Part shown: positions 2,000 to 33,164 of the stretch, piece after piece
How positions within the stretch are numbered: the first letter of the stretch is position 1
Layout: each line of letters starts with the position of its first letter
DNA from: Epithemia pelagica
Taxonomy: Eukaryota; Protista; Bacillariophyta
Assembly (NCBI GenBank): GCA_946965045.2
Contig: OX337240.1
Location: 868,001 to 932,000, forward strand
Reading direction: 5' to 3'
DNA length: 64,000 nt
Made by a program: the position numbers and the translations under genes
The notes under the pieces: generated by a model
Told to the model about the DNA's origin: nothing
What the model saw: the letters and a program-made list of their open reading frames with translations, nothing else
Database searches by the model: none

Positions 2000-2605
2000 T
2001 GTGATCTGCGTCCAATGCAAGAAACATAGTACCGCTGTGGAAGAAACGAACGGATACAGTTAGAAGAAGGAGGACACCCTGTGTTTTGCTTGATGCAAGT
2101 ACGCCTCCTTGCGAATGGTCTCGCTGTCGTTCGTTCGAAGTTGAGATTGAGAAAGTCTTTGGTCGTAAGGAGAAGGATACGTGATGAAAGGTGTATGGTG
2201 TGGATGGAAATAATCGTTTGCCACTCATACACGGTAGTCGACGAGAAGTCATGAGAAATGTTCAGACGAAGGACCAACGAAGATCCAATCTGATGATCCA
2301 TTACTCTCATTCCTTCTCTCATGGCTCTGTTCATTATCCCATCACCGGAAGAAAGATTGCTTCTTTTTCTCTGAATGAAATACTCCAAAATCCCTTAGCT
2401 AAGGAACGAGTCTGGTACTCATCCCTCTTCCCTCTTCGCTTACGGATAGAGAGCTAACGTTAAACCTAAGCGTTCGCCTTTCGGACATTGCACGCACCTC
2501 CAGCTTTTGAGTCGCTGAACCACCGCGCATTTTTTTGAAGAATTGGGCGTTTTTCTCACTATCCGTATTGTGGTCCGCAAGCCGTAAGGTCCAAAGCAAG
2601 GCACC

Positions 2606-5257
2606 ATGGAGGAGTTTACCACAACACCGTCTTCCCTCCTCAATTCAGAATTGCACTCGACTCTGCATGATCGTCAACGTCGCAATCAGCGCATGATTGG
2701 GAAGGAAGATCAGCTTCGTGCTCGTCGCTATGGAATGTGTGAACTCGGACGCAATGGTCGGTTGAAGTACACCTACAATGGCAAAATTTTGATTTGGTGC
2801 CCCGTCTCCAACCGTGCCATTACGTGTTGGAATGTGCCCCCACACGAACGAGGACCCGAGACGAGTGGTACCAGCCATACTGACCCTATTCTCATTCAAA
2901 AGAGTCATACACATACGTCTCCTTATGCAGAGACGGCTCATTCGTTGGTCAGTCATCAAATTCGCAATCAGTTGGACAAATGGAAGAGTCATACGGTCTT
3001 GGTGGTCGATATGAGTGGCTCGATGCGGACAGACGATGTCGACGGCGCCCGCTGCCGGTCGGATGGAGTTTGGACGTGTTTGGCCAAGGACTTTGTCAAG
3101 AAACAAGTGGAAGAGGGCAAAACGTCACTGCATGATTTGGTGAGTGTCGTCTTGATGCGCGATACAGCAGAGGTTGTGCTCGAATGTGAACCTACCGATT
3201 ATGTCTTGTACAACAAACTGGTCGATCTGCGGGAATGGAGTCGTCACAGACCAGGAGGCCATGGGAACTACGAACCAGCTCTGGAAAAGGCCGAAGAGCT
3301 CTTGAACAAGAATCGATCGGGATCCTGTGCTGTCTGCCTATTCTTCTTTTCTGATGGACGCCCGTCCGATGCTAACAAACAAGAGTTGCCGAACAAAATG
3401 GGAGCCCTGGCAAGTCGCTTTGGAAGGCGACTTACTGTTACATGTGTGGGCATGGCCAACCATCAGAAAGAAGATTTCTCCATTCTAGAGAAAATGGTAC
3501 ACGAAGCCAAAGCTTACGGAGCCGTCGCTTCTTTTAACAAACCGTCCATGGATGCTAACTCCCTTTCCTCCATTATTTCTACGCAAATGGCCTCCTCTTT
3601 GACGTCCACCAAGACCGAACTGACCAATCTGTCATCGGGGAAAAGCATGACGGTTCGAACGGACCTGGTACGAGAACGACAAAATGCACCGGATGATCTG
3701 GTACCAAATTTTGATTGGAGAATGTTCAATACGTCTTCCATGTACACAGTCCAGGTGTGGGCCTGGGCAAACCGCCATACTAATCGCAGGCAAAATCACG
3801 ACACCGGAGGTGAGTTTTGTCGTCTGATTGATCCACGGTGTGCATCGTGTTACAAAGTCACCGTTCTGGATCCTGCCTTGCAAGATGCCAATCCACAAAA
3901 GGGAAAGATGTGTTCCGGTTGCAGGGCGTGCTTCTTTTGCCATACTTGTTTGAAAAATCGGGCTGCCGGTCGGAGTCACCCAAAGTCAGTGTGCGAAGCC
4001 ATGGCTTCTGCACGACGAAAAGGAGAGTTCATGCTCTTGAAAGAAACGTGTAATTTACCATCTTTTTCTGTCGCATGGAAAAGGCAGTGTTTCGGAGAAG
4101 GAGCTGAACGGGTAGCCTTCAAATTTCGATATCTGGATGATGAAGGTGATTTCACCGGTCCACGCATGGTGGCCAAGGAATCAAGGTTTGTGGACAAGGA
4201 AGATCTTGATGGCATTCAGAAAGCTAGTTTGTATTTATCCTCCAGTCAGCACAAGTATCATAGGACCTTCATGCGGACACAGTTTTGTGCCGCTCAATGT
4301 GCCGATAAGTTCAATGAAACTCTTCGGCAATGGGAAAACCATCTCGACGACATTGCCAAAGGACGACCAGATGATCATGCGTTGCTAGAAAAATGCCGCT
4401 TTTACAAGGCAAGGATTCGACGGTATCCTCGAGTGCAGTTTTTACAACCACGGATTTTCGAGTTGGTCGACCGCGACAAATGCAAGACATTTAACGTTTT
4501 GGTGGAGCCCATGATTGAAGGCAACTACCGTAAATACAACAACAATAATGGCGGTCTCGTGGGTGGAGGAGCCAAATTCCAATCTCCCTTTTTGCCACCA
4601 CAGCAAAGTCCCGATGGCAGCTTGAATCCTTCCTTGGTACAGCTGTTATTGGGAAGCAAAGAAAATGCCAATGACGGGCAGGACGCTACAGCAAGTCTCG
4701 GAGGTGGCACTTCCAATGCTGTCACTCCCGCAAGAGGAGCAAACAATCTGCTTGGAGCTATTGCAGAAGGAGACTCGGACGAAGAAGAGGAAGACGAATC
4801 AGACGAGGAAGACGAAAACCACGCTGAGGGTCTTCGAGCAGCCACTAACAATGAAGATCAGACTTCACCCGGTCGTCCTCGGGAACTCTTTGAAAGAATT
4901 GTCCAAGAAGGAGACTGGTCCAAACGGAAACTTACCACAGAAGTTATTCCCGATGAAGATTTCATGCAAGCCTTTAGTCATTTCTCGTTTGTGCAAAGTC
5001 GTGGACGACTTATTGTGGTCGATCTGCAAGGGTCACTCAGTGTATGTCCCAAGGTGGGAACAAAAGAATTTGTTTTGACGGATCCCGCAATCCACAAACG
5101 CAAAAAGTCAAAATTTCTCAAGAACTGGAAGTTTGGACGCACGGATCGTGGTGATAGAGGCATTAAAGATTTTTTTGCCACCCATGTCTGCAATGATGCA
5201 TGTAGACTCTTTGGACTGAAAGAAAAGAAAGAACATCAAAAGTATCCCTACTATTGA
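2606..5257 (+). CDS. vWA-domain alpha-kinase (eEF2K/MHCK-type), with an N-terminal small alpha/beta domain and a MYND-like Zn module
   Basis: vWA MIDAS LVVDMSGSM and FFSDGRPSD. Alpha-kinase motifs FGEGAERVAF, VAKESRF, EPMIEGNYRKYNNNNG, QAFSHFS, VVDLQG, LTDPAIH, and TDRG...FFATHVCNDAC. Confidence 0.92.
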   Translation: MEEFTTTPSSLLNSELHSTLHDRQRRNQRMIGKEDQLRARRYGMCELGRNGRLKYTYNGKILIWCPVSNRAITCWNVPPHERGPETSGTSHTDPILIQKSHTHTSPYAETAHSLVSHQIRNQLDKWKSHTVLVVDMSGSMRTDDVDGARCRSDGVWTCLAKDFVKKQVEEGKTSLHDLVSVVLMRDTAEVVLECEPTDYVLYNKLVDLREWSRHRPGGHGNYEPALEKAEELLNKNRSGSCAVCLFFFSDGRPSDANKQELPNKMGALASRFGRRLTVTCVGMANHQKEDFSILEKMVHEAKAYGAVASFNKPSMDANSLSSIISTQMASSLTSTKTELTNLSSGKSMTVRTDLVRERQNAPDDLVPNFDWRMFNTSSMYTVQVWAWANRHTNRRQNHDTGGEFCRLIDPRCASCYKVTVLDPALQDANPQKGKMCSGCRACFFCHTCLKNRAAGRSHPKSVCEAMASARRKGEFMLLKETCNLPSFSVAWKRQCFGEGAERVAFKFRYLDDEGDFTGPRMVAKESRFVDKEDLDGIQKASLYLSSSQHKYHRTFMRTQFCAAQCADKFNETLRQWENHLDDIAKGRPDDHALLEKCRFYKARIRRYPRVQFLQPRIFELVDRDKCKTFNVLVEPMIEGNYRKYNNNNGGLVGGGAKFQSPFLPPQQSPDGSLNPSLVQLLLGSKENANDGQDATASLGGGTSNAVTPARGANNLLGAIAEGDSDEEEEDESDEEDENHAEGLRAATNNEDQTSPGRPRELFERIVQEGDWSKRKLTTEVIPDEDFMQAFSHFSFVQSRGRLIVVDLQGSLSVCPKVGTKEFVLTDPAIHKRKKSKFLKNWKFGRTDRGDRGIKDFFATHVCNDACRLFGLKEKKEHQKYPYY

Positions 5258-5718
5258 AAAAGAAAGAAGTAACGTGAAGAGCAGGTCTTGAGGAGAAATT
5301 GTGTGGTTAATAAACTCTTCCTAATTGTCCAAATCTTTTTTAAGTTTCTAGAGTAATGGTTTCAGCAGGAGTTGAAGGAGTATGGCTAGAACTTAGGACC
5401 AAATAACAATGCGGGTAGCCTGAGTAGGAGTAACTTGAGTGATCATATAGGAGTAGTTGGAGCTAGGACAGCTAGGATTCGACGACATACATTGAAGGTC
5501 ATGCCGTGAGTCGTGGTACGTCTTACCGTCTTCCGTATCTGTTCCTGGCAACCAGCCATTTCTGTACTTTCAGGTCCAGTCGCTGATGCGATTGATGACC
5601 ATTCGGAAGTGTCGATGTTTTACTTCCGTTTTGGGGGAGATTCGCAATTCTCATGAAGAAGGGCTCATAAAAAGTGAAAAGAGAACCTCGAACCACTCAT
5701 TACAGACACATCTGAATC

Positions 5719-6897
5719 ATGCAATACAATGCTCCTTACGAAGACATTCCGTATGCCAAAGCCGCTTACGTGATGAGCAGCGATAATCCTGTCCCAATGC
5801 CTCCACCGACTACATCTCCCAAGCTGAAATCTAGTCACGCGCCCCTGTCAGAACAACAGATCAATCGTCTGACAGATCAAGGTTTTACAAGAAGCCTGGC
5901 CGAGTCACTCAACCAGACGAAACAAGCTTTTGCTCTTTGCATATGGGTTATAGACAATTCGGGGAGCATGCAAGCCGCCGATGGACATCGTTTCATTGGT
6001 AACATAAACAATAGGGGTGGAGGGGGCAAGCTGAAGATGGTCGATTGCTCAAGATGGGATGAAATTTGCGACAGTGTCGAAAACCACATCCGACTGGCAT
6101 CACTTTTGGATGCACCAACACGGTTTCGATTTCTGAACGCACCGAGCGTAAATATTGGGCCTGGCAAGTTCACGATCGCTGAGGACAGCACGGTTCGCCC
6201 CGAGGATGAAGTGAGAAACGCCGTAAATCTTGTCAGAAAGGTCCGACCTGGTGGTTGCACACCACTCACTCAGCACATTATGGAGATTCATCGTGAAATC
6301 GAAGCGTTGACCCCTCAGCTAAGAAAGACGGGTCAACGTGTTTCAATTACCATTGCCACTGATGGTTTGCCCACAGATGAAAGGGGCTACGGTGGCGAGC
6401 TTTATCAGAATGAGTTTGTCGACAGTCTTCGCTTGCTTGAAGGCCTTCCAGTATGGGTGGTGATTCGCTTGTGCACTGACGATGAAGGCGTTGTGGACTT
6501 CTACAATCGCCTTGACGAAATACTGGAACTTTCCATCGACGTTCTCGATGATTTTCTGGGAGAGGCCAAAGAGGTTTATGGCGAGAATCCATGGCTGACT
6601 TATTCGTTGCCCCTTCATCGCATTCGTGAAATGGGGTACCATGATCGATTGTTCGATTTGATTGATGAACGAAGGCTCACCACGAGCGAAATCAGGGATT
6701 TTTGTATCCTCCTCTTTGGCTCTGACACTTTCGACGGAGCCCCAGACCCCTCCTCTGATTGGAAAGGTTTCGTCAAGGTACTAGACCGCGCATTGAAGAC
6801 AACGGAAACACAGTGGAATCCTGTGAAGCACAAGGCAAAGCCTTTGGTCAGCGTGAAGAGGCTAAATCGATTTTACGGTCGTTCCTCATGCTTTTGA
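5719..6897 (+). CDS. Stand-alone vWA-domain protein
   Basis: MIDAS motif VIDNSGSM, GCTPLT and ITIATDGLP; 392 aa uninterrupted ORF. Confidence 0.85.
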   Translation: MQYNAPYEDIPYAKAAYVMSSDNPVPMPPPTTSPKLKSSHAPLSEQQINRLTDQGFTRSLAESLNQTKQAFALCIWVIDNSGSMQAADGHRFIGNINNRGGGGKLKMVDCSRWDEICDSVENHIRLASLLDAPTRFRFLNAPSVNIGPGKFTIAEDSTVRPEDEVRNAVNLVRKVRPGGCTPLTQHIMEIHREIEALTPQLRKTGQRVSITIATDGLPTDERGYGGELYQNEFVDSLRLLEGLPVWVVIRLCTDDEGVVDFYNRLDEILELSIDVLDDFLGEAKEVYGENPWLTYSLPLHRIREMGYHDRLFDLIDERRLTTSEIRDFCILLFGSDTFDGAPDPSSDWKGFVKVLDRALKTTETQWNPVKHKAKPLVSVKRLNRFYGRSSCF

Positions 6898-11348: not shown

Positions 11349-12080
11349 TTGAAGTCAGCAGTGCGTGGTGTCACCAACTTTGTGCCGTTGCAAATGGGCG
11401 GACGAGGTGGCACACACATGGTGTCGGAAGGATCCGCGCGGTTGATTCAGGTTGAAGTTTCGTTGGAGGATTTGGAACACATGACAACTCTATTCTACAA
11501 AAAGGCATTTCAAGATCACACATTGGACAAGTTTATTCGATCACATGAGGACCCACATGGTGCTCGGTTCGCCAAGTGGATTCACCAAAAATTGAGTGGC
11601 TCGTCCGTGTGGGATCAAGATCGTCAAGAGCGAAACTTGGAACCGGCTCGTGTGGCGGGTGGTCATCGTCACGTGGTACATGATCGCTCGTCGGCTCATG
11701 TGGCGGCCTGGCATTCTCCCAAACGTCCGTCGCGGGAGGTGGGACGGCATTTCAAATTGGATGAATGCCGTGTTTGGATGCGCTTGCATTTCTGGGCCAT
11801 GCGAGAATCGGGCTTGATGGACACTGCTCCCAACTTTTGTGATTACTATGTACGATTCATTGGACATTTTGTCCGTGTGTACGAATCCACCGCACCCCTC
11901 TTTGCACGAGACAGTTTGCGCTGGTCGGAGGACTCGTCCAATATTGCACGATACTTGGAACAAGGCCGTCGTATGAACGATATCTTGGGTTTGTCCGTGT
12001 CGGAATCGAAGGCGCAGCTTCCATTGCATGAAGCACAAGACTCGGAATGGCCTTACATTCAAAGTCCTCAGCGTGGATAG
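11349..12080 (+). CDS. Truncated-haemoglobin-like (2/2 globin, group II-like) protein
   Basis: Helix pattern LFYKKAFQDHTLDKF (B/CD), HGARFAKW (E), AHVAAW (F) and FKLDECRVWMRLH (G8 Trp-like). The 5' end is uncertain; see the frameshift finding. Assigned by pattern only. Confidence 0.6.
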   Translation: MKSAVRGVTNFVPLQMGGRGGTHMVSEGSARLIQVEVSLEDLEHMTTLFYKKAFQDHTLDKFIRSHEDPHGARFAKWIHQKLSGSSVWDQDRQERNLEPARVAGGHRHVVHDRSSAHVAAWHSPKRPSREVGRHFKLDECRVWMRLHFWAMRESGLMDTAPNFCDYYVRFIGHFVRVYESTAPLFARDSLRWSEDSSNIARYLEQGRRMNDILGLSVSESKAQLPLHEAQDSEWPYIQSPQRG

Positions 12081-12375
12081 AGAGCGAGAGAACAGACTGG
12101 ATTACCCTCTATTGTATACTGAATGATACCGATGAGAAAACTACTAGGAGTACACCATTAAAAACGATACGCCCAACAATATAATCGTTCAACGTGTTAT
12201 GGTATAGAATGCAGGAGTATGCGGACTGTGTATTCTGTGATATTTTGATTCCTGTGGTAGTAGTAGTAGTAGCATTGGCTTCTAGTGGCTATCTGAAACA
12301 ACATAGTAGAGTTAAGTTTTGCGACTAAGATTGACTTTGTGAGGATACAAGAAAATTCGATTATCGTATGCGGAA

Positions 12376-22393: not shown

Positions 22394-23768
22394 CAGTCGG
22401 TTGCATGTTTACGTGTCGCTGTCGGCCCATTGCACTGTTACGTGATCTGAGACTCTCAGGGACATCTCCCTCTTCAGAGCTCTCAACCGTGGAATTCGTC
22501 CACCATAGCTTGGCGAACTTACGGGCCAAGGCACTATTTGGTACTGCTACAAGTCAGAAAAATATTCCAGGCTTGAAACATGTGAAGAACTATGTTGCGA
22601 TCAAACAAGTGGCTCTTAACTAAGTATGGAGTTTTTTGAAGAGTGCTCGAGTTGTGCTGTGCCTTGCGCTCAAAGTTCCTGCGTTTACCTGGTGACAACA
22701 ACACGCAATTGATAGAAACAACCACTGATGACCGTGCCAACGGGAGCCCTTCTGACTAACCGCATCCACAGTTACGACAAGGTCCAAGCTACCCATTGTA
22801 GGCACCACAATATTGACAGTACCATCCCGGAGGAGGTGCCGCACCAACACCACCCTTTGTAGTAGTCAGGGCCTCCTCAATCACTTCACAGCCCATCAAA
22901 CTGGAGCCGACGAAACAACGACAAAATGGGTAAGGAAGGAGTATCTTCTCGATTGACAACAATAACTCTGCTCCTTGGTTCGACTCACATGTTACTTTTC
23001 TCCAAAGTCATCTTTTTGTTTGCTCACTTGATTAGTGTTCGTCTTCTGTTGATGGAAATCTGAAGGATTCAAGTTTTATGAGCACAGAATGCTGCACATT
23101 CTGGCTATATCCTTTTCTGCGCGAATGGATCTTTCTATCCCCGACACCTCATTCTCTTTCTTGTCTTTGGGTCACTGTGACTGCCTGCATCCTTCAGGCC
23201 AGTCGCGTTCGAATTGGTGTGTCTATTGATTGAAATTTTGGGGGGATATGTAGGACTTGAATCGCGTTGAAATTTTGGATAACCCCAAGGATTCAATCGC
23301 GTTCCATGAGAATCATGCCTGGTTCCCTTTTGTACTGTAAACGGTTTTCTTGGAAGATATTTCTGTGGGGAACGTGCTCGAATCCAAAGACTCTCATATG
23401 CATACTCATCAATGTCGTGCTGATTGGAATGTTTCGCTGTGACAGTGACTTTTCCACTGGATCCGGATGGTGTATATGGTGACTGTTGTCGGTGTCGGCC
23501 TCCCGAGCGAGGCGTTAGTTGCCCATGTAAGGGCACAAGATATCAACCTTGTTGTGGCGGACAATGAAGTTGCAGGTGAGCAATCTTGGAAACACTGTTT
23601 GGTGTGCACAGCGGATTAGGTTATTCTGATCAATCTAGGTAGTGCGATGGATGAGTCCCATTCAAGACAAACAGTTCATTGAAGGAGGAGGGAGTTAAAC
23701 AGATTGAATTGATAAACAGGCTGTGGACCCCCCATCCCCTACCTGGTGTTCAAAAGGTCCTGAGTCCT

Positions 23769-24336
23769 GGAACACTCGGAACTTTGTAGTTGGGGACACA
23801 TAGCCTCGATTGCTAGGAGACACTTCTCGTCCTCTAGCTGGCGACGCTCTAGTCTCGATTGTCTTGTAGGCTTTAGTGGGTAGTCCTGTAGGGTAGAAAA
23901 GGGCAATACATCTGGACACGAGTACATATTTGGACAACATCTCCTCAACGGAGAATTTTTAGTCTTGTAGTGGACAGCGTGACATAATTGATTTAACATT
24001 TTCAATCCCGTATGTGCCCAGACAAAATAATATCCCTAAGTAGCGATTCCTGCGGTCCGTTGAAGAAGAGAATGTACTGGAAGTAAATACACTACCATAG
24101 AGCACCGAGATCCCGGAGAGCCGGGGGATGTCCGTTCCTGTTAATATCGCCTACGGGAATCACAAACCAATCAGCGATCGAACTGGACAACTGGACAACT
24201 GGACAAATCGAACTGGACAACTGGACAACTGGACAACGAACTGGACAACTGGACAACTGGACAACTGGACAACTGGACAACTGGACAACTGGACAACTGG
24301 ACAACTGGACAACTGGACAACTGGACAACTGGATAA
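23769..24336 (+). repeat. Left inverted-repeat arm, ending in an (CTGGACAA)n array (about 18 units, 24180-24336)
   Basis: GGAACACTCGGAA...GATTGCTAGGAGACACTTCT, CTCAACGGAGAA, ATCCCGTATGTGC and GAGCCGGGGGATGTC all match the reverse complement of the right arm. Confidence 0.9.
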
Positions 24337-24494
24337 ACGATGCAACAATAGAAGGACACAACAAACAAGCCAACGAACGAACTAACAATCAAGGACGCAA
24401 CAAACAAATAACCCAACAATCAACCAGGATTTTACTATGGAGAATTAGTTCTACCTATGGGTTTTGGTGATCAGGTACGAGTGGCAGGTACGAG

Positions 24495-24908
24495 TCAGCC
24501 GGAGGAAGACATCTGATCAGAGTCGAACACAACAGGGCGAAACCAAGCCTTTGAGCCCTTGTTTCGCTGTTTGTCGATGGCACGCTGAAGTCGGAGCTTG
24601 AAGAGGGCGGTCATCTGGTCGGGGCTCTGAAGCCCACACTGAGCGAACTGCTTGACAAGGTGGTTAAGCTTTTTTTCAAGGTCAAGGTGCTGTTGCAAGA
24701 TGGCTTCTTCAACGCATCGGGGAGGCTTGATCGTGCTCTCAAGAGCCACACTCTCCTTGGAAACAAGGGTATATTTGACGGCACCCTCGCCCATGTCGAT
24801 AATGACGGGAAGCATGCATTTGGTTGCTGAGCGTTGTGTGTTCAGCCAACCTTTACTTCCGACAAACGTGCCGCCAATGAAGCGGATAGGTTCGCCTCGA
24901 CCGTCCAT
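24495..24908 (-). CDS. Element ORF-A: 137 aa, KOW/SH3-like N-terminus plus helical C-terminus
   Basis: ATG ORF. GEPIRFIGGTFVGSKGWL fits the KOW pattern G-x2-h-x-h-x2-G-x-F/Y-x-G-x2-G (inference). Confidence 0.65.
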   Translation of the reverse strand: MDGRGEPIRFIGGTFVGSKGWLNTQRSATKCMLPVIIDMGEGAVKYTLVSKESVALESTIKPPRCVEEAILQQHLDLEKKLNHLVKQFAQCGLQSPDQMTALFKLRLQRAIDKQRNKGSKAWFRPVVFDSDQMSSSG

Positions 24909-24952
24909 GATTCAACAATCAACCAATTGCCTGAGTGGAACAACAAGTAAAG

Positions 24953-25054
24953 ACGCAACAATCAAAGCAAGAAAGAGGGTCCGAGAAGAGTGGAAAGATT
25001 TGAACGCAACAATCAAAGCAAGAAAGAGGGTCCGAGAAGAGTAGAAAGATTTGA
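24953..25054 (+). repeat. 51 bp two-copy tandem repeat between ORF-A and the transposase (also at 28567-28668)
   Basis: ACGCAACAATCAAAGCAAGAAAGAGGGTCCGAGAAGAGT(G/A)GAAAGATTTGA x2, one mismatch. Confidence 0.9.
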
Positions 25055-25302
25055 GACAAAGAGTCTCGCTGTTCATTCGGCCTGCGTCCAGTCGAAGGGT
25101 GCCCCGCGGGAAGTGACATCCCCAACAACGTAGATTTAAGTCTCCTATTAGTCACAACTTCTATGGATTCAAATGCTTTAGTATGTGCTCGCTCTTCATC
25201 TACTTTATTGGTTCACTTTCTACTTTACAGGCTCGCCTTTTCATCTACTTGCCTCTCCTGTCTTTTGTACTCGTAGGATCATAAGCTTTGCCGAACACGA
25301 AA

Positions 25303-26220
25303 ATGAGACTCTTGCTTCCTGATGATATGATGCAACATGGCATCAAGCTTTTGGGCTTTTCATACGATTCTGTCATGAAGATGTCCCCCGCAAAGCAGGA
25401 GAAGGTCTTTCGCTCACACTATGGTTCGTCGCCCCTGGTGGTTGCACATGTGTGGTATGATCTTACCACAACCGACATCGCAAGTTCCAAGCTCAACGAC
25501 AGTGAGAAGACAGAGAAAGGATTGAAGAGGTTCTTTGTTGCGATGTATTTTCTGTTCACTTACCCAAAAAATGCGCATATCATTGCAACCATGTTTCACC
25601 AAAATGAGAAATATTCCCGGGGTGAGGCAGTGTGGCAGTGGGTCCGTAAGATCCAAGGCCTGAAAGCCAAAGTCATCATTTGGCCTCAATCACATGACGA
25701 CCCGAACCGTGAAGTGTATGTTGTTACAGTTGATGGGGTGGACATGAAGACATGGGAACCGATGCATGAAACCTTTCCGCATGACCGACAATTCTTTTCC
25801 AAGAAATTTGCGCATGGTGGGCTGAAGTACGAGTTGGCAGTGAGTGTATTTTGGGGTCGGCTTGTCTGGATCAATGGCCCGTACAAGGCAGGCTGTCATG
25901 ACCTGACCATCTTTCGAAACGGGCTTAAGGATCGCTTGGCAGATGGCAAGATGGCGATCGCTGACCGAGGATACGTTTCCTCTAGGGAAGATGAGGTCCA
26001 CAAATTGGCAACGCCCAGAGCCACCGACAGTACGGAACTAGCAAAGTTCAAGTCTCGTTGCCGATGCAGGCATGAGACATTCAATGGAAGGATCAAGAAC
26101 TTCCGCATTCTGTCTGACACATACCGCCACTCCCTGGACAACCATCAGGCAGCTTTCGAAGCGGTTTGTGTCCTTGTCCAGTATCAAATCATGAATGGTT
26201 CTACGTTGTTTAACATCTAG
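25303..26220 (+). CDS. DDE transposase, PIF/Harbinger-ISL2EU/IS5-like (DDE_Tnp_4-type), copy 1
   Basis: TVDGVD, FSKKFAHGGLKYELAV, VWINGPYKAG.HDLTIFR, IADRGY and RCRHETFNGRIKNF. The catalytic acidic residues appear intact. Confidence 0.88.
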   Translation: MRLLLPDDMMQHGIKLLGFSYDSVMKMSPAKQEKVFRSHYGSSPLVVAHVWYDLTTTDIASSKLNDSEKTEKGLKRFFVAMYFLFTYPKNAHIIATMFHQNEKYSRGEAVWQWVRKIQGLKAKVIIWPQSHDDPNREVYVVTVDGVDMKTWEPMHETFPHDRQFFSKKFAHGGLKYELAVSVFWGRLVWINGPYKAGCHDLTIFRNGLKDRLADGKMAIADRGYVSSREDEVHKLATPRATDSTELAKFKSRCRCRHETFNGRIKNFRILSDTYRHSLDNHQAAFEAVCVLVQYQIMNGSTLFNI

Positions 26221-26377
26221 AGAGTAGGTCTAACATGGCAAAATAACCAATAACCAATAACAAACGATCCTAAAAATAGTTATCATCTTGATGCATATTA
26301 TGACTACTTCTCTGTACCACGTGGCATATAACAGAAAAGGATTCGCTTTCTTCTTCTTCGTTACTCAGTACTAAAGC

Positions 26378-27970
26378 TCAAAGGGATGCAAAGAGAGAGT
26401 TGACATCAGTCACACCACCATCAGAGGATCCACCAACTGGGACAGACTTGCTGTCAGAGACCATCCAATAAACATAGACAGAAAAAAATGAGGTGCGCCC
26501 ACTCTGTTTTTTCATTGGCGCCGTCTTCCTCGTCATGTTGATGTTGTCCCCAGGGTGAATCACTGAGTTGTCTAACTCAACGCCCTCGGGGAAAATTCCA
26601 AGCCAATTCTTGCTACTGCATGCCTTGTTGAGCTTGCTCTTCATGAATGTTGAATGCAGCCGGTTGCTGACATTCTTCGAGTTGTCTCCGGTGAACTCTG
26701 CGTCTTCAAAACGCGACAAAAACTGATCAACATCATCATCCATCGAATCACGCCACGGACCTTCAATCAAGATGGCACGTCTCTCCAAGCCAGGGAAACC
26801 AGTGGCAATCCTTGCGCTGTACTTGTCGATATCCAGTGGCTCGACTTTCATTCGGATGATGTAGACGGTGCGTTCGTGTTTGTGATACACAACGCCAGGC
26901 ACTCGGAAGACCATCACCTCATGAGAATCGGGGTAGTCAAATGAGATGTTGACAATCTTCGGGTTTTGGATGGTGCCCAAAGGGAACTCGGTCATTTCGC
27001 CAGAGTTTCCGCTGCTGCTGTCGGTCGAGGACGACATGATGGGAACGGCTGTGATGGGAGCTGGGACTGAGGCTTGGTCAGGGAGGACGAAGGAAGGAGG
27101 TGCAAGTTGGATGCCTTGTGGCTCAGGAGATGGAGATTGAAAGCTGGAGAACCGCGGTGGAGTTGCAAAGGAGGGAAGGTCTCCTCCGAATGCAACGGCT
27201 CTCTTCGAAGTTGCACGCGGCGGCGTATGGAACCGTGCAGATGTTGCGCCGGTTGACTGGACCTTGCTGGGCGGGCGATGTATTTTGATGTCTCCTGCGC
27301 CTGCGCCTTCGTCAAGCTTGTGCTTGCTTGCCTGGACGCGCGGTTCAGAGGCAACGGACAAGTTCGTAAATCCACCAATCAACGCGAAATCGTCGATGTT
27401 TTGTTCCTCCTCCTCGGATGCCTCGTCGTCCACCGCGAGGTCTTCGAAATCGACGTCGTCAACGCTGCTCGTCGTGGTGCCGGAACTTGCTGGGCCACTG
27501 TAAGCAGCGAACGCCTCTCTGTTGGTGCCAAAGTTGCTGAGGATCCGAGTGTTCCACTCAGCAAGGGTCCGCTCACTGGGGGTGATCTTGTACTCGTCCA
27601 GGAGCTTCTTGTACTTCTCAATGTCAAGCTTGGTAAGTGACGAACAGCGCTTTTGAAAGCGGCGGAAGATCTTCCCAGAGCCGTACTTGTCACTTGACGA
27701 GGCTCCTCCCACGATGTCGGAAAAGAAGACTTCGGCTCGAGGCTTGGATGGGATGCTCTCGATGTCTTGCAAGAGAGTTTTCACCTGCTCGTTCGATAAG
27801 AATGAGGGATTCGGCATTATGAGAGGTTGTGAGCCTTTCTTTGCAAAGCAACAAACTACTCGTAGACCTGTCAAAAGCAACATTAGTCTTATTTTCATTC
27901 CTACGTATACGCAATCATAGGTACATCTTAGGCATTGGTACTGCGTTGCTGTGGAGCATTTTGGCGCCAT
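26378..27970 (-). CDS. Element ORF-C copy 1: unknown protein (helical N-domain, acidic/Ser-Pro linker, alpha/beta C-domain)
   Basis: 530 aa ORF convergent with the transposase; an alternative start at 27817 gives MPNPSF. No family recognised. Confidence 0.75.
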   Translation of the reverse strand: MAPKCSTATQYQCLRCTYDCVYVGMKIRLMLLLTGLRVVCCFAKKGSQPLIMPNPSFLSNEQVKTLLQDIESIPSKPRAEVFFSDIVGGASSSDKYGSGKIFRRFQKRCSSLTKLDIEKYKKLLDEYKITPSERTLAEWNTRILSNFGTNREAFAAYSGPASSGTTTSSVDDVDFEDLAVDDEASEEEEQNIDDFALIGGFTNLSVASEPRVQASKHKLDEGAGAGDIKIHRPPSKVQSTGATSARFHTPPRATSKRAVAFGGDLPSFATPPRFSSFQSPSPEPQGIQLAPPSFVLPDQASVPAPITAVPIMSSSTDSSSGNSGEMTEFPLGTIQNPKIVNISFDYPDSHEVMVFRVPGVVYHKHERTVYIIRMKVEPLDIDKYSARIATGFPGLERRAILIEGPWRDSMDDDVDQFLSRFEDAEFTGDNSKNVSNRLHSTFMKSKLNKACSSKNWLGIFPEGVELDNSVIHPGDNINMTRKTAPMKKQSGRTSFFSVYVYWMVSDSKSVPVGGSSDGGVTDVNSLFASL

Positions 27971-28212
27971 CCTTTTTGGCGCCGTCCTTATTCATACCTC
28001 TACGCAATCATAGGTACATTTTGGCCGTTGATACGCATTGCTATCCATTCGTGCCGTGCGTTGCATGGCATACATCACAGCGAAGCGACTGTTCGCGGGA
28101 AGCAGCTTCCCGTCAAGGGTGGGTCTTGTTTGACGCTATTCTATCAATGAAAGAGCATTGACATGGCAATCAAACTGTTTCTACTATCATCTTATCGCTC
28201 ATAACTTCTAAG

Positions 28213-28548
28213 ATGGCACCGATTGGAAAGGAAGGTTGGATTCCCTGGCGCAAGAGCGCAACTCGAGCTCTCATCGTTTCTGAGTTGGAAAGCGGTGGCA
28301 TTCCACTCACGCATGCAATTGGAGTCACGGCCGAAGATGTTTGGAGCAAGTACAAGGATCATGAAACTGTTGTGTCCGAGAAAGTGGTCAAGGAGCAGTT
28401 TCTTCTCCGTCTCAGGGACCACCAGAAACAAGTAGCTATCAAGAAACAATGTTCCTCACGTGAGGAAATCGCCCTCCGTCACGACCTTGCCATGCATCCT
28501 CCTCTCTGTCGCAACGCCTTCGGCCGTCACAATCAACCAATTGCCTGA
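28213..28548 (+). pseudogene. Element ORF-D copy 1, truncated by the duplication junction at 28528
   Basis: Identical to 31827-32387 up to ...NAFGR, then reads HNQPIA* from the next unit. Confidence 0.85.
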
Positions 28549-28916
28549 GTGGAACAACAAGTAAAGACGCAACAATCAAAGCAAGAAAGAGGGTCCGAGA
28601 AGAGTGGAAAGATTTGAACGCAACAATCAAAGCAAGAAAGAGGGTCCGAGAAGAGTAGAAAGATTTGAGACAAAGAGTCTCGCTGTTCATTCGGCCTGCG
28701 TCCAGTCGAAGGGTGCCCCGCGGGAAGTGACATCCCCAACAACGTAGATTTAAGTCTCCTATTAGTCACAACTTCTATGGATTCAAATGCTTTAGTATGT
28801 GCTCGCTCTTCATCTACTTTATTGGTTCACTTTCTACTTTACAGGCTCGCCTTTTCATCTACTTGCCTCTCCTGTCTTTTGTACTCGTAGGATCATAAGC
28901 TTTGCCGAACACGAAA

Positions 28917-29834
28917 ATGAGACTCTTGCTTCCTGATGATATGATGCAACATGGCATCAAGCTTTTGGGCTTTTCATACGATTCTGTCATGAAGATGTCC
29001 CCCGCAAAGCAGGAGAAGGTCTTTCGCTCACACTATGGTTCGTCGCCCCTGGTGGTTGCACATGTGTGGTATGATCTTACCACAACCGACATCGCAAGTT
29101 CCAAGCTCAACGACAGTGAGAAGACAGAGAAAGGATTGAAGAGGTTCTTTGTTGCGATGTATTTTCTGTTCACTTACCCAAAAAATGCGCATATCATTGC
29201 AACCATGTTTCACCAAAATGAGAAATATTCCCGGGGTGAGGCAGTGTGGCAGTGGGTCCGTAAGATCCAAGGCCTGAAAGCCAAAGTCATCATTTGGCCT
29301 CAATCACATGACGACCCGAACCGTGAAGTGTATGTTGTTACAGTTGATGGGGTGGACATGAAGACATGGGAACCGATGCATGAAACCTTTCCGCATGACC
29401 GACAATTCTTTTCCAAGAAATTTGCGCATGGTGGGCTGAAGTACGAGTTGGCAGTGAGTGTATTTTGGGGTCGGCTTGTCTGGATCAATGGCCCGTACAA
29501 GGCAGGCTGTCATGACCTGACCATCTTTCGAAACGGGCTTAAGGATCGCTTGGCAGATGGCAAGATGGCGATCGCTGACCGAGGATACGTTTCCTCTAGG
29601 GAAGATGAGGTCCACAAATTGGCAACGCCCAGAGCCACCGACAGTACGGAACTAGCAAAGTTCAAGTCTCGTTGCCGATGCAGGCATGAGACATTCAATG
29701 GAAGGATCAAGAACTTCCGCATTCTGTCTGACACATACCGCCACTCCCTGGACAACCATCAGGCAGCTTTCGAAGCGGTTTGTGTCCTTGTCCAGTATCA
29801 AATCATGAATGGTTCTACGTTGTTTAACATCTAG
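28917..29834 (+). CDS. DDE transposase, copy 2 (identical protein)
   Basis: Same translation as copy 1, offset +3614. Confidence 0.88.
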   Translation: MRLLLPDDMMQHGIKLLGFSYDSVMKMSPAKQEKVFRSHYGSSPLVVAHVWYDLTTTDIASSKLNDSEKTEKGLKRFFVAMYFLFTYPKNAHIIATMFHQNEKYSRGEAVWQWVRKIQGLKAKVIIWPQSHDDPNREVYVVTVDGVDMKTWEPMHETFPHDRQFFSKKFAHGGLKYELAVSVFWGRLVWINGPYKAGCHDLTIFRNGLKDRLADGKMAIADRGYVSSREDEVHKLATPRATDSTELAKFKSRCRCRHETFNGRIKNFRILSDTYRHSLDNHQAAFEAVCVLVQYQIMNGSTLFNI

Positions 29835-29991
29835 AGAGTAGGTCTAACATGGCAAAATAACCAATAACCAATAACAAACGATCCTAAAAATAGTTATCAT
29901 CTTGATGCATATTATGACTACTTCTCTGTACCACGTGGCATATAACAGAAAAGGATTCGCTTTCTTCTTCTTCGTTACTCAGTACTAAAGC

Positions 29992-31584
29992 TCAAAGGGA
30001 TGCAAAGAGAGAGTTGACATCAGTCACACCACCATCAGAGGATCCACCAACTGGGACAGACTTGCTGTCAGAGACCATCCAATAAACATAGACAGAAAAA
30101 AATGAGGTGCGCCCACTCTGTTTTTTCATTGGCGCCGTCTTCCTCGTCATGTTGATGTTGTCCCCAGGGTGAATCACTGAGTTGTCTAACTCAACGCCCT
30201 CGGGGAAAATTCCAAGCCAATTCTTGCTACTGCATGCCTTGTTGAGCTTGCTCTTCATGAATGTTGAATGCAGCCGGTTGCTGACATTCTTCGAGTTGTC
30301 TCCGGTGAACTCTGCGTCTTCAAAACGCGACAAAAACTGATCAACATCATCATCCATCGAATCACGCCACGGACCTTCAATCAAGATGGCACGTCTCTCC
30401 AAGCCAGGGAAACCAGTGGCAATCCTTGCGCTGTACTTGTCGATATCCAGTGGCTCGACTTTCATTCGGATGATGTAGACGGTGCGTTCGTGTTTGTGAT
30501 ACACAACGCCAGGCACTCGGAAGACCATCACCTCATGAGAATCGGGGTAGTCAAATGAGATGTTGACAATCTTCGGGTTTTGGATGGTGCCCAAAGGGAA
30601 CTCGGTCATTTCGCCAGAGTTTCCGCTGCTGCTGTCGGTCGAGGACGACATGATGGGAACGGCTGTGATGGGAGCTGGGACTGAGGCTTGGTCAGGGAGG
30701 ACGAAGGAAGGAGGTGCAAGTTGGATGCCTTGTGGCTCAGGAGATGGAGATTGAAAGCTGGAGAACCGCGGTGGAGTTGCAAAGGAGGGAAGGTCTCCTC
30801 CGAATGCAACGGCTCTCTTCGAAGTTGCACGCGGCGGCGTATGGAACCGTGCAGATGTTGCGCCGGTTGACTGGACCTTGCTGGGCGGGCGATGTATTTT
30901 GATGTCTCCTGCGCCTGCGCCTTCGTCAAGCTTGTGCTTGCTTGCCTGGACGCGCGGTTCAGAGGCAACGGACAAGTTCGTAAATCCACCAATCAACGCG
31001 AAATCGTCGATGTTTTGTTCCTCCTCCTCGGATGCCTCGTCGTCCACCGCGAGGTCTTCGAAATCGACGTCGTCAACGCTGCTCGTCGTGGTGCCGGAAC
31101 TTGCTGGGCCACTGTAAGCAGCGAACGCCTCTCTGTTGGTGCCAAAGTTGCTGAGGATCCGAGTGTTCCACTCAGCAAGGGTCCGCTCACTGGGGGTGAT
31201 CTTGTACTCGTCCAGGAGCTTCTTGTACTTCTCAATGTCAAGCTTGGTAAGTGACGAACAGCGCTTTTGAAAGCGGCGGAAGATCTTCCCAGAGCCGTAC
31301 TTGTCACTTGACGAGGCTCCTCCCACGATGTCGGAAAAGAAGACTTCGGCTCGAGGCTTGGATGGGATGCTCTCGATGTCTTGCAAGAGAGTTTTCACCT
31401 GCTCGTTCGATAAGAATGAGGGATTCGGCATTATGAGAGGTTGTGAGCCTTTCTTTGCAAAGCAACAAACTACTCGTAGACCTGTCAAAAGCAACATTAG
31501 TCTTATTTTCATTCCTACGTATACGCAATCATAGGTACATCTTAGGCATTGGTACTGCGTTGCTGTGGAGCATTTTGGCGCCAT
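29992..31584 (-). CDS. Element ORF-C copy 2 (identical protein)
   Basis: Same translation as copy 1, offset +3614. Confidence 0.75.
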   Translation of the reverse strand: MAPKCSTATQYQCLRCTYDCVYVGMKIRLMLLLTGLRVVCCFAKKGSQPLIMPNPSFLSNEQVKTLLQDIESIPSKPRAEVFFSDIVGGASSSDKYGSGKIFRRFQKRCSSLTKLDIEKYKKLLDEYKITPSERTLAEWNTRILSNFGTNREAFAAYSGPASSGTTTSSVDDVDFEDLAVDDEASEEEEQNIDDFALIGGFTNLSVASEPRVQASKHKLDEGAGAGDIKIHRPPSKVQSTGATSARFHTPPRATSKRAVAFGGDLPSFATPPRFSSFQSPSPEPQGIQLAPPSFVLPDQASVPAPITAVPIMSSSTDSSSGNSGEMTEFPLGTIQNPKIVNISFDYPDSHEVMVFRVPGVVYHKHERTVYIIRMKVEPLDIDKYSARIATGFPGLERRAILIEGPWRDSMDDDVDQFLSRFEDAEFTGDNSKNVSNRLHSTFMKSKLNKACSSKNWLGIFPEGVELDNSVIHPGDNINMTRKTAPMKKQSGRTSFFSVYVYWMVSDSKSVPVGGSSDGGVTDVNSLFASL

Positions 31585-31826
31585 CCTTTTTGGCGCCGTC
31601 CTTATTCATACCTCTACGCAATCATAGGTACATTTTGGCCGTTGATACGCATTGCTATCCATTCGTGCCGTGCGTTGCATGGCATACATCACAGCGAAGC
31701 GACTGTTCGCGGGAAGCAGCTTCCCGTCAAGGGTGGGTCTTGTTTGACGCTATTCTATCAATGAAAGAGCATTGACATGGCAATCAAACTGTTTCTACTA
31801 TCATCTTATCGCTCATAACTTCTAAG

Positions 31827-32387
31827 ATGGCACCGATTGGAAAGGAAGGTTGGATTCCCTGGCGCAAGAGCGCAACTCGAGCTCTCATCGTTTCTGAGTT
31901 GGAAAGCGGTGGCATTCCACTCACGCATGCAATTGGAGTCACGGCCGAAGATGTTTGGAGCAAGTACAAGGATCATGAAACTGTTGTGTCCGAGAAAGTG
32001 GTCAAGGAGCAGTTTCTTCTCCGTCTCAGGGACCACCAGAAACAAGTAGCTATCAAGAAACAATGTTCCTCACGTGAGGAAATCGCCCTCCGTCACGACC
32101 TTGCCATGCATCCTCCTCTCTGTCGCAACGCCTTCGGCCGTCCATTCTGGAACGGCTCTGATGCACAGAATTTTCTGGAACAAGATGTCTTCAACCGAGT
32201 TTATGAACGCATGCATGTTGGCCTGCTCTACCTCAGCCGCCCTGAGTACCAGGAGTTTCCGATGCGTTTGTTCCGTCATCATCTCTACCAAGAGATCAAA
32301 CGCCAGAAGTTTATCTGTTTCCTTGAAATGAAGCGGGCCCAGAAACTAGCCACCAAGCGAGCCAAAGATCAGACCCGTAGCTCTTAA
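31827..32387 (+). CDS. Element ORF-D: 186 aa basic helical protein with two W-x2-S-led repeats
   Basis: ATG ORF. WRKSATRALIVSEL...FLLRLRDHQKQ and WNGSDAQNFLEQDV...FRHHLYQEIKRQ resemble each other. Confidence 0.75.
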   Translation: MAPIGKEGWIPWRKSATRALIVSELESGGIPLTHAIGVTAEDVWSKYKDHETVVSEKVVKEQFLLRLRDHQKQVAIKKQCSSREEIALRHDLAMHPPLCRNAFGRPFWNGSDAQNFLEQDVFNRVYERMHVGLLYLSRPEYQEFPMRLFRHHLYQEIKRQKFICFLEMKRAQKLATKRAKDQTRSS

Positions 32388-32458
32388 AGTAAATTGGTTG
32401 ATTGTTGTGCCATTCCTCTAGTTTGTCTTCGTAGTCTTTTGTACAGTTGTTCGTAATC

Positions 32459-33046
32459 TTTGTCCAGTTGTCGAGTTGTCGAGTTGTCGAGTTGTCGAGT
32501 TGTCCAGTTGTCCAGTTGTCCAGTTGTCCAGTTGTCCAGTTGTCCAGTTGTCCAGTTGTCCAGTTCGTTGTCCAGTTGTCCAGTTGTCCAGTTCGATTTG
32601 TCCAGTTGTCCAGTTGTCCAGTTCAATCGCTGATTGTCAAGTTCAGTTTTGTGTTTCCCGCAGGTCATGTTAATACGAATCGACATCCCCCGGCTCCCCA
32701 ACTTGTCATATATTGTACTATTCTACAGTAGAATTTTTCTGAACGGATCGTATCTTCTGGAGTACTTAGCGATCAAATTTTCAAGTCCGCACATACGGGA
32801 TCAAAAGTATCGATCAGACCCTGTCACGCCCATCGCTACAGGACTAACATTTCTCCGTTGAGTTGGTCGTGTACAGAAAATCGCGATAAGTATCCATGTC
32901 CAGTTATATTGCCCCATTTGTCCCTTCCGGACAACGTCACGAACCGAACTAGACTAGAGAGCTCTAAGCCTGAATAGCTAGAGGACAAGAAGTGTCTCCT
33001 AGCAATCGAGTCTATATGTCCCCAACGACATAATTCCGAGTGTTCC
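32459..33046 (-). repeat. Right inverted-repeat arm with a (TTGTCCAG)n array (about 19 units, 32459-32624; four TTGTCGAG variants)
   Basis: Reverse complement matches the left arm, including the array interruptions ATCGAA and CGAA at the same positions. Confidence 0.9.
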
Positions 33047-33164
33047 TGAGGAGATACCGATAATCGACAGGTAGCAAAAAGGATAGGAGTAAGGGATAGG
33101 ACGGCTATCACCTTAGCTTACCTCTAGCTATTAGTCTATAGCTCTAGAGGCGTCACATGTCATA

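Follow-up and report, generated by a model that had tools for sequence, protein, structure and literature searches.

A probable four-gene Harbinger-superfamily DNA transposon with long inverted arms in the diatom Epithemia pelagica

Introduction

Harbinger elements are textbook two-protein DNA transposons. ISL2EU elements make a 2-bp target-site duplication and often carry a YqaJ-like nuclease, and Spy elements have a single open reading frame (ORF) and no target-site duplication. The canonical PIF/Harbinger elements are said to have been set out by Kapitonov and Jurka in 2004. Here, we investigated a locus in the diatom Epithemia pelagica that lies in a stretch of 64,000 nucleotides (NCBI GenBank assembly GCA_946965045.2, contig OX337240.1, positions 868,001 to 932,000 of the forward strand), which we call the window and whose own numbering is used below. 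Positions 23770–33045 of the window are probably an autonomous cut-and-paste DNA transposon that belongs to the Harbinger/PHIS superfamily and was active recently, with four conserved genes in two divergent pairs.

Canonical PIF/Harbinger elements (PMC2806351) and the mPing/Ping system (PMC2836001) have been described previously, and Harbinger transposases need a separately encoded, Myb-like ORF1 partner (PMC2836001; PMC4482050). The NuwaI group, described in 2015 and only from animals, makes a 3-bp duplication at 5'-CWG-3', is about 4.5 kb long, encodes a transposase and a Myb/SANT protein in two ORFs, and has terminal repeats of 12–61 bp that usually start with GGG (Han et al. 2015, PMC4482050). 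The PHISTA elements of rust fungi have TA duplications, a TET/JBP dioxygenase, and a third protein without a Myb/SANT domain (Kojima 2025, PMC12730594). The same study places Harbinger4_TP of the diatom Thalassiosira pseudonana in a sister lineage of PHISTA, with 3-bp duplications consistent with Nuwa (PMC12730594).

Copies and termini

The same assembly holds five further copies of the element (L001–L005), on different contigs and at unrelated loci with different neighbor genes. The copies are 98.9–99.7% identical, and the genes of the five run D(−) C(+) transposase(−) A(+), which is the order in the window without its internal duplication. The original prediction proposed testing whether the linkage recurs, and six unrelated loci do share the same order and arms. 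All four ORFs are intact in the window, as had been noted, and in nearly all of the six copies; the exceptions are a frameshift in C of L003 and an interrupted transposase in L004. Because the copies are ~99% identical and intact, the element is a candidate active transposon; it is young, and its mobility is probably still ongoing. As a rough indication of abundance, element depth is ~6–7 times flank depth in short-read contigs from three public runs. Looked up by exact sequence, the four proteins each fell in small clusters that derive from a single ENA assembly.

We aligned the junctions of the copies to set the termini, as the original prediction had advised, and obtained GAACACTCGGAA...TTCCGAGTGTTC (GAACAC...GTGTTC). 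The element proper thus spans 23770–33045, and the bases at 23769 and 33046 belong to the target-site duplication, which is an identical CTG triplet on the left (23767–23769) and the right (33046–33048). Insertion duplicates 3 bp, mostly CWG: five of the seven sites have CAG or CTG, and the remaining two have ATG and CGG. CAG was read in the window (CTG on the plus strand), L002, and L004, CTG at both ends of L001 and at the left end of L003 (its one readable end), and ATG on both sides of L005. Direct triplets stand at the five complete copies of the window's family and at L009, a decayed relative in the same genome (CAG three times, CTG, ATG, and CGG). As CAG on both sides is a direct and not an inverted arrangement, the triplet is a target-site duplication lying outside the terminal repeat. 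The filled site of the window copy also shows TCCTGAG twice (TCCTGAG, TCCTG, element, CTGAG...). We rejected a 7-bp TCCTGAG duplication because the other copies fix the GAACAC...GTGTTC ends with 3-bp triplets.

The inverted arms, given earlier as ~570–590 bp, are ~570 bp long and occupy 23770–24336 (plus strand) and 32468–33045 (minus strand) by repeat search and self-BLAST, with the terminal repeat starting GAACACTCGGAA. The self-BLAST alignment of 23769–24336 with 32468–33046, in inverted orientation, spans 599 columns, of which 75.3% are identical (E = 9e-106). Identity between the arms rises to ~92% over the outermost ~71 bp, and their subterminal arrays of an 8-bp unit, CTGGACAA, are 96% identical. 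The left array (24181–24334, plus strand) consists of 3 units, ATCGAA, 3 units, CGAA, and 11 units. The right array (32460–32631, minus strand; TTGTCCAG on the plus strand) has the same block layout and includes four CTCGACAA variant units, and both arrays are oriented alike relative to their own terminus. Every copy of the window's family has this layout in both arms (3 units, ATYGAA, 3 units, CGAA, n units), and the inner block is the sole part of variable length, with n from 4 to 17. The length differences between copies are all multiples of 8 and therefore reflect array length. Such a layout fits a set of fixed, putative binding sites followed by a slippage-prone block.

Two of the copies carry insertions. 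In L003 (13331–21102 of the locus, contig ctg1238l), a copia-type long terminal repeat (LTR) retrotransposon that encodes a 1895-aa RVT_2 polyprotein, and whose two ends each carry ORFs of 56 aa and 259 aa, sits between transposase and A; the same retroelement recurs upstream in L003 and downstream in L005. In L004 (12462–17850, contig ctg1117l), a ~5.4-kb insertion of LTR-like appearance splits the transposase gene and has a 1130-aa ORF between two 212-aa ORFs of the same orientation. At the window locus, the element is flanked by an adenylate-kinase-like ORF and an ORF that is weakly GST-like (E = 8e-4, under the Pfam cutoff). A short-read contig (run X2) matches the left flank to 23732; beyond that point its sequence diverges from the flank and ends in ...GGTCCTGAGG (window 23732–23769; 30 letters visible), and this contig could be an empty allele that joins the left and right flanks. 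Furthermore, two biofilm metagenomes (runs X4 and X6) hold 6–20% of the element's sampled words at 99% likeness or more, so the host or a very close relative occurs in biofilms.

Coding capacity

The ORF listing agrees with the layout first described, A(−), transposase(+), C(−), D(+), once the duplication is discounted; A/transposase and D/C are the divergent pairs. Gene A (24495–24908, minus strand) encodes 137 aa. The first transposase gene (25303–26220, plus strand) encodes a 305-aa DDE_Tnp_4 protein that matches Pfam PF13359 at E = 7e-12 (45.6 bits, cutoff 24.8), and its DDE triad is conserved across three lineages within the motifs VDGVD, ADRGY, and RHETFN. The first C gene (26378–27883, minus strand) is 501 aa as called, with an ORF that extends to 27970. 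After it stands an extra, truncated D gene of 111 aa (28213–28548, plus strand), cut at the duplication junction 28528/28529. The second transposase (28917–29834, plus strand) and second C (29992–31497, minus strand) are identical to the first copies, and the intact D gene (31827–32387, plus strand) encodes 186 aa.

Non-synonymous changes among the copies fall below expectation for the pooled genes (ratio of non-synonymous to synonymous polymorphism, pN/pS, 0.33, p = 2e-5). Taken singly, gene A gives 0.06 (p = 0.003), the transposase 0.24 (p = 0.004), and gene C 0.39 (p = 0.01).

A repeat search also found two 45-nt direct repeats, 82% alike and 93 bp apart, at 27897–28034 and again at 31511–31648. 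They lie at and just upstream of the C ORF start, on the C–D promoter side, and may be regulatory.

Conserved gene linkage

We fetched related loci through homologues of C or D and searched the ORFs of these loci using phmmer and family hidden Markov models (HMMs). Wherever the contig is long enough, all four families (A, transposase, C, and D) lie together within at most 7 kb, and they do so in seven further divergent lineages: L006 and L009 from the same genome, and L007, L010, L011–14, L015–17, and L018 from other samples. With C set on the plus strand and T for transposase, the orders are as follows. L006, a second family of the same genome, reads D− C+, then a SET-domain gene, then T− A+, and L009, a third and decayed family, reads D− C+ T− A+. 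L007 reads D− C+ T− up to the contig end. Both L010 and L015–17 read D− C+ A− T+, L011–14 reads T+ D− C+ A−, and L018 reads D− C+, two further genes, A− T+. D and C are an adjacent divergent pair in 8 of 8 lineages, and A and transposase in 6 of the 7 where both were seen. In tblastn searches of L006 and L007, C is the least similar to the window protein (~24% identity) and the transposase the most (57%); for the other lineages, detection was by profile E-value.

In L006, the inverted arms measure ~750 bp, in L009 ~600 bp, and in L015 312 bp or more. For L010, where the contig end interrupts it, the terminal inverted repeat is just 54 nt long. Long inverted arms are therefore typical of the clade and not peculiar to the window copy. 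The original prediction had counted the long, array-bearing arms, along with the three accessory genes, as pointing to a distinct system; the arms and arrays are there, but as a feature of the whole clade. Arrays with a GGACA core stand at both ends of L006 and L011. The terminus of L009 is GAACACCCGG with CGG on both sides, and the end of the environmental relative L015 is CCGGGTGTTC followed by CTG.

The families themselves are large. An exhaustive HMMER search with C gave 65 representatives, all unnamed, which share a two-domain pattern and the motifs GTxxNP, PERN, HIR, GPS, and YWLLVFP, and a profile search with D gave at least 126 clusters, all unnamed, two of them fused to a SAP domain. 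Homologues of A in other lineages are mostly beside a transposase. A word-based homologue search with C returned its own cluster only, and a related-locus search with the transposase alignment returned one 1.2-kb metagenome locus.

Several relatives carry additional genes. L006 has a fifth gene, which encodes a SET (lysine methyltransferase) domain (11489–12274 of the locus, contig ctg1357l; 27.4 bits, cutoff 22.4) and lies between C and the transposase, inside the ~750-bp inverted arms with their GGACA arrays, and a chlorophyll a/b-binding-type gene is found near this locus. L018 (Logan contig, SRR29699978) is a relative of ~7.2 kb in which two unnamed genes (2493–4329), for proteins of 341 aa and 229 aa, separate A from C, and its subterminal repeats, CCAGCGTAAAACC and GTGAGCCAGTGTGAGCC, are unlike the GGACA arrays. 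In L010, the four conserved genes are joined by a 523-aa unnamed ORF (4985–6556), which also lies between the 54-nt terminal inverted repeats.

Structural models of the accessory proteins

The accessory genes had been described as belonging to no recognizable family, and our searches concur: A, C, and D have no Pfam match, nor do 41 members of the C family. When A, C, D, and the transposase were searched as profiles against PDB sequences, nothing meaningful emerged, and hhalign profile–profile comparison showed A, C, and D to be mutually unrelated.

The AlphaFold model of C has a confident helical region (residues 30–128) and a confident beta-rich region (residues 300–482) joined by a disordered Ser/Pro-rich linker. 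Residues 300–482 form a beta-sandwich whose best VIA-align matches, at Z scores of 6–7, are HSP16, Hsp20.1, and the CS domains of Shq1 and Sgt1. The best Foldseek matches of C in the PDB have E values of 3e-3 or worse, and no HSP20 or CS Pfam match was found in the 41 family members. All shape searches of the ESM Atlas gave template modeling (TM) scores below 0.4.

The model of D (predicted local distance difference test score 79) shows two three-helix modules with long third helices, followed by a basic tail. The Atlas shape closest to it, with a TM score of 0.36, belongs to a Myb-bearing cluster. A Myb/SANT Pfam match is absent from A, C, D, and seven members of the D family at E values up to 1. 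Judged by the model, D is compatible with a Myb-like DNA binder and is the best candidate for the missing Myb-like partner. Atlas feature searches for A and D gave scores below 0.9, and A has weak KOW/SH3-like leads, which concern its N-terminus.

Several results weigh against reading the locus as an active transposon served by these proteins. The likeness of C to HSP20/CS domains falls below the VIA-align noise bar of Z ~8, as do the matches of D to FF, homeodomain, and SANT folds (Z 4–6), and Foldseek found no match in the PDB at E ≤ 0.001 for the C or D model. The leads for A amount to a Pfam KOW match in one of seven members (E = 0.18) and an Atlas feature score of 0.71. Gene D shows no non-synonymous deficit among the copies (pN/pS 0.83, not significant), and the element was not shown in any RNA run. 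No paper in the searched literature describes the four-gene layout, but Repbase lay outside that scope and a prior entry there is possible. Of the outcomes named beforehand as refuting the prediction (ORFs that are independent single-copy host genes, no linkage elsewhere, or a known family with this layout), none was observed, and the prediction of a multi-gene element nevertheless stands.

A tandem repeat inside the window copy

The earlier reading implied a duplicated layout, and the period scan revealed an exact tandem repeat: 24915–28528 equals 28529–32142 over 3,614 bp with 0 mismatches. As a consequence, transposase and C are each present twice in the window copy, D once intact and once truncated, and A once. 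The duplication was seen in the window copy and in none of the five others. Its junction has no usable microhomology, and an octamer, CCGTCCAT, occurs near both breakpoints but out of register. We consider the duplication likely to be real; a template switch or a faulty gap repair would be its most likely origin in the window copy.

It is unlikely, though a serious contender, that the repeat is an assembly artefact and that the true locus, like the other copies, has one element of 5.66 kb. The perfect match between the two units would suit this explanation. So would the short-read contigs of runs X1–X4, none of which was shown to bridge 28528/28529 and whose loose ends enter ordinary D sequence; these runs may derive from the sample behind the window assembly. 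The failure to see the junction in independent contigs, which continue into ordinary D, counts against a real duplication. However, contigs running into ordinary D at 28528 are what the other copies would yield, and rare variants are dropped from contigs, so an unseen junction proves nothing. Judging by its contig names, the assembly is probably a long-read one, and single reads would then be long enough to contain a 9.3-kb element. The duplicated part is also slightly deeper than gene A (440 versus 414, and 511 versus 460), with the caveat that depth is not copy number.

Possible roles of the accessory genes

The conserved linkage and the deficit of non-synonymous changes suggest that the transposition machinery includes A, C, and D as putative subunits. 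In the mechanism we propose, the ~570-bp arms, with their conserved terminal sequence and oriented CTGGACAA arrays, would be the protein-binding ends. D would stand in place of the usual Myb/SANT partner, binding the subterminal arrays and recruiting the transposase. C, with its helical domain and alpha-crystallin/CS-like beta-sandwich, could be an adaptor or a chaperone-like scaffold, and A could be a small cofactor that binds nucleic acid or protein. The two bidirectional intergenic regions would co-express the gene pairs.

It is also conceivable, if doubtful, that A, C, and perhaps D are conserved cargo that performs some other service, for example acting on host chromatin or silencing. The beta-sandwich of C is weakly like alpha-crystallin/CS adaptor domains, and in Arabidopsis the Harbinger-derived proteins HDP1 and HDP2 belong to an anti-silencing complex with the alpha-crystallin-domain proteins IDM2 and IDM3 (PMC5339849). 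The extra SET-domain gene of the sister family L006 and the TET/JBP gene carried by fungal PHISTA elements (PMC12730594) point the same way. However, the fold matches lie under the noise bar, and Pfam searches of A, C, and D revealed no known chromatin domain. The DNA-binding partner on which Harbinger transposases normally depend would also lack a candidate if D were cargo.

A bolder version of the machinery reading is distinctly unlikely, though it joins these strands. A three-protein module would replace the Myb/SANT partner: D would be a new DNA-binding fold that reads the GGACA arrays, C would serve as an adaptor resembling alpha-crystallin, and A would act as a cofactor. C, like the SET gene of the sister family, would recruit or modify host chromatin and so keep the element expressed. 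If this were true, the element would encode its own counterpart of the plant HDP1/HDP2–IDM2/IDM3 anti-silencing complex.

Lastly, a composite locus, with A–transposase and D–C mobile units nested or adjacent, or with host genes caught between inverted repeats by chance, would suit the varying relative order and orientation of the two pairs between lineages and the extra genes that can separate them (L006, L018), but it is highly improbable because each copy has a single pair of termini and a single target-site duplication, the repeat search found no internal terminal repeats, both pairs lie within the same arms in every complete element, and C- and D-family genes fetched via their own homologues are always beside a DDE_Tnp_4 gene.

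Four conserved genes without a recognizable Myb partner would mean that the accessory machinery of Harbinger elements can be rebuilt. Three sizeable unnamed protein families gain a clear genomic context, the oriented CTGGACAA arrays offer a ready-made, testable hypothesis of putative binding sites, and the family is possibly usable as a genetic tool in the diatom.

Relation to described transposons

The original prediction likened the locus to both Harbinger and ISL2EU. The Harbinger half holds, with 3-bp, mostly CWG duplications, and the ISL2EU half does not, beyond a transposase of a related DDE superfamily. With 3 bp duplicated, the element is neither ISL2EU, which duplicates 2 bp, nor Spy, which duplicates none. 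Furthermore, no YqaJ match was found in A, C, or D with Pfam, and four ORFs are present where Spy has one.

Canonical PIF/Harbinger elements share the DDE_Tnp_4 transposase, the 3-bp duplication, and presumably the dependence on a separately encoded partner with the element. They differ in their target, which is AT-rich (TWA) and was found at none of the sites read here, where CWG prevails, and in having one Myb-like ORF1 against three accessory genes of unnamed families; the arms of the diatom element are also very long. PHISTA is likewise a PHIS-superfamily element with more than two genes and so provides a precedent for multi-gene Harbinger relatives, but neither its TA duplications nor its TET/JBP dioxygenase is present here.

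The Arabidopsis IDM complex resembles the element in combining Harbinger-type transposase/partner proteins with alpha-crystallin-fold adaptors, an analogy only and one that involves a weak fold match. Unlike the element, it is a host complex of domesticated genes, and no direct contact of HDP1/HDP2 with IDM2/IDM3 was observed (PMC5339849).

NuwaI offers a partial correspondence. The element is of Harbinger type, and its 3-bp CWG duplication fits the NuwaI group and not ISL2EU: both have a Harbinger-type DDE transposase and a 3-bp duplication at 5'-CWG-3' (five of seven sites here). Compared by description, the element differs from NuwaI in that it carries four conserved ORFs, in none of which a Myb/SANT domain was detected, and in its ~570-bp arms with 8-bp arrays and termini that start with GAACAC. 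Judged likewise by description, Harbinger4_TP of Thalassiosira pseudonana may be the nearest named relative.

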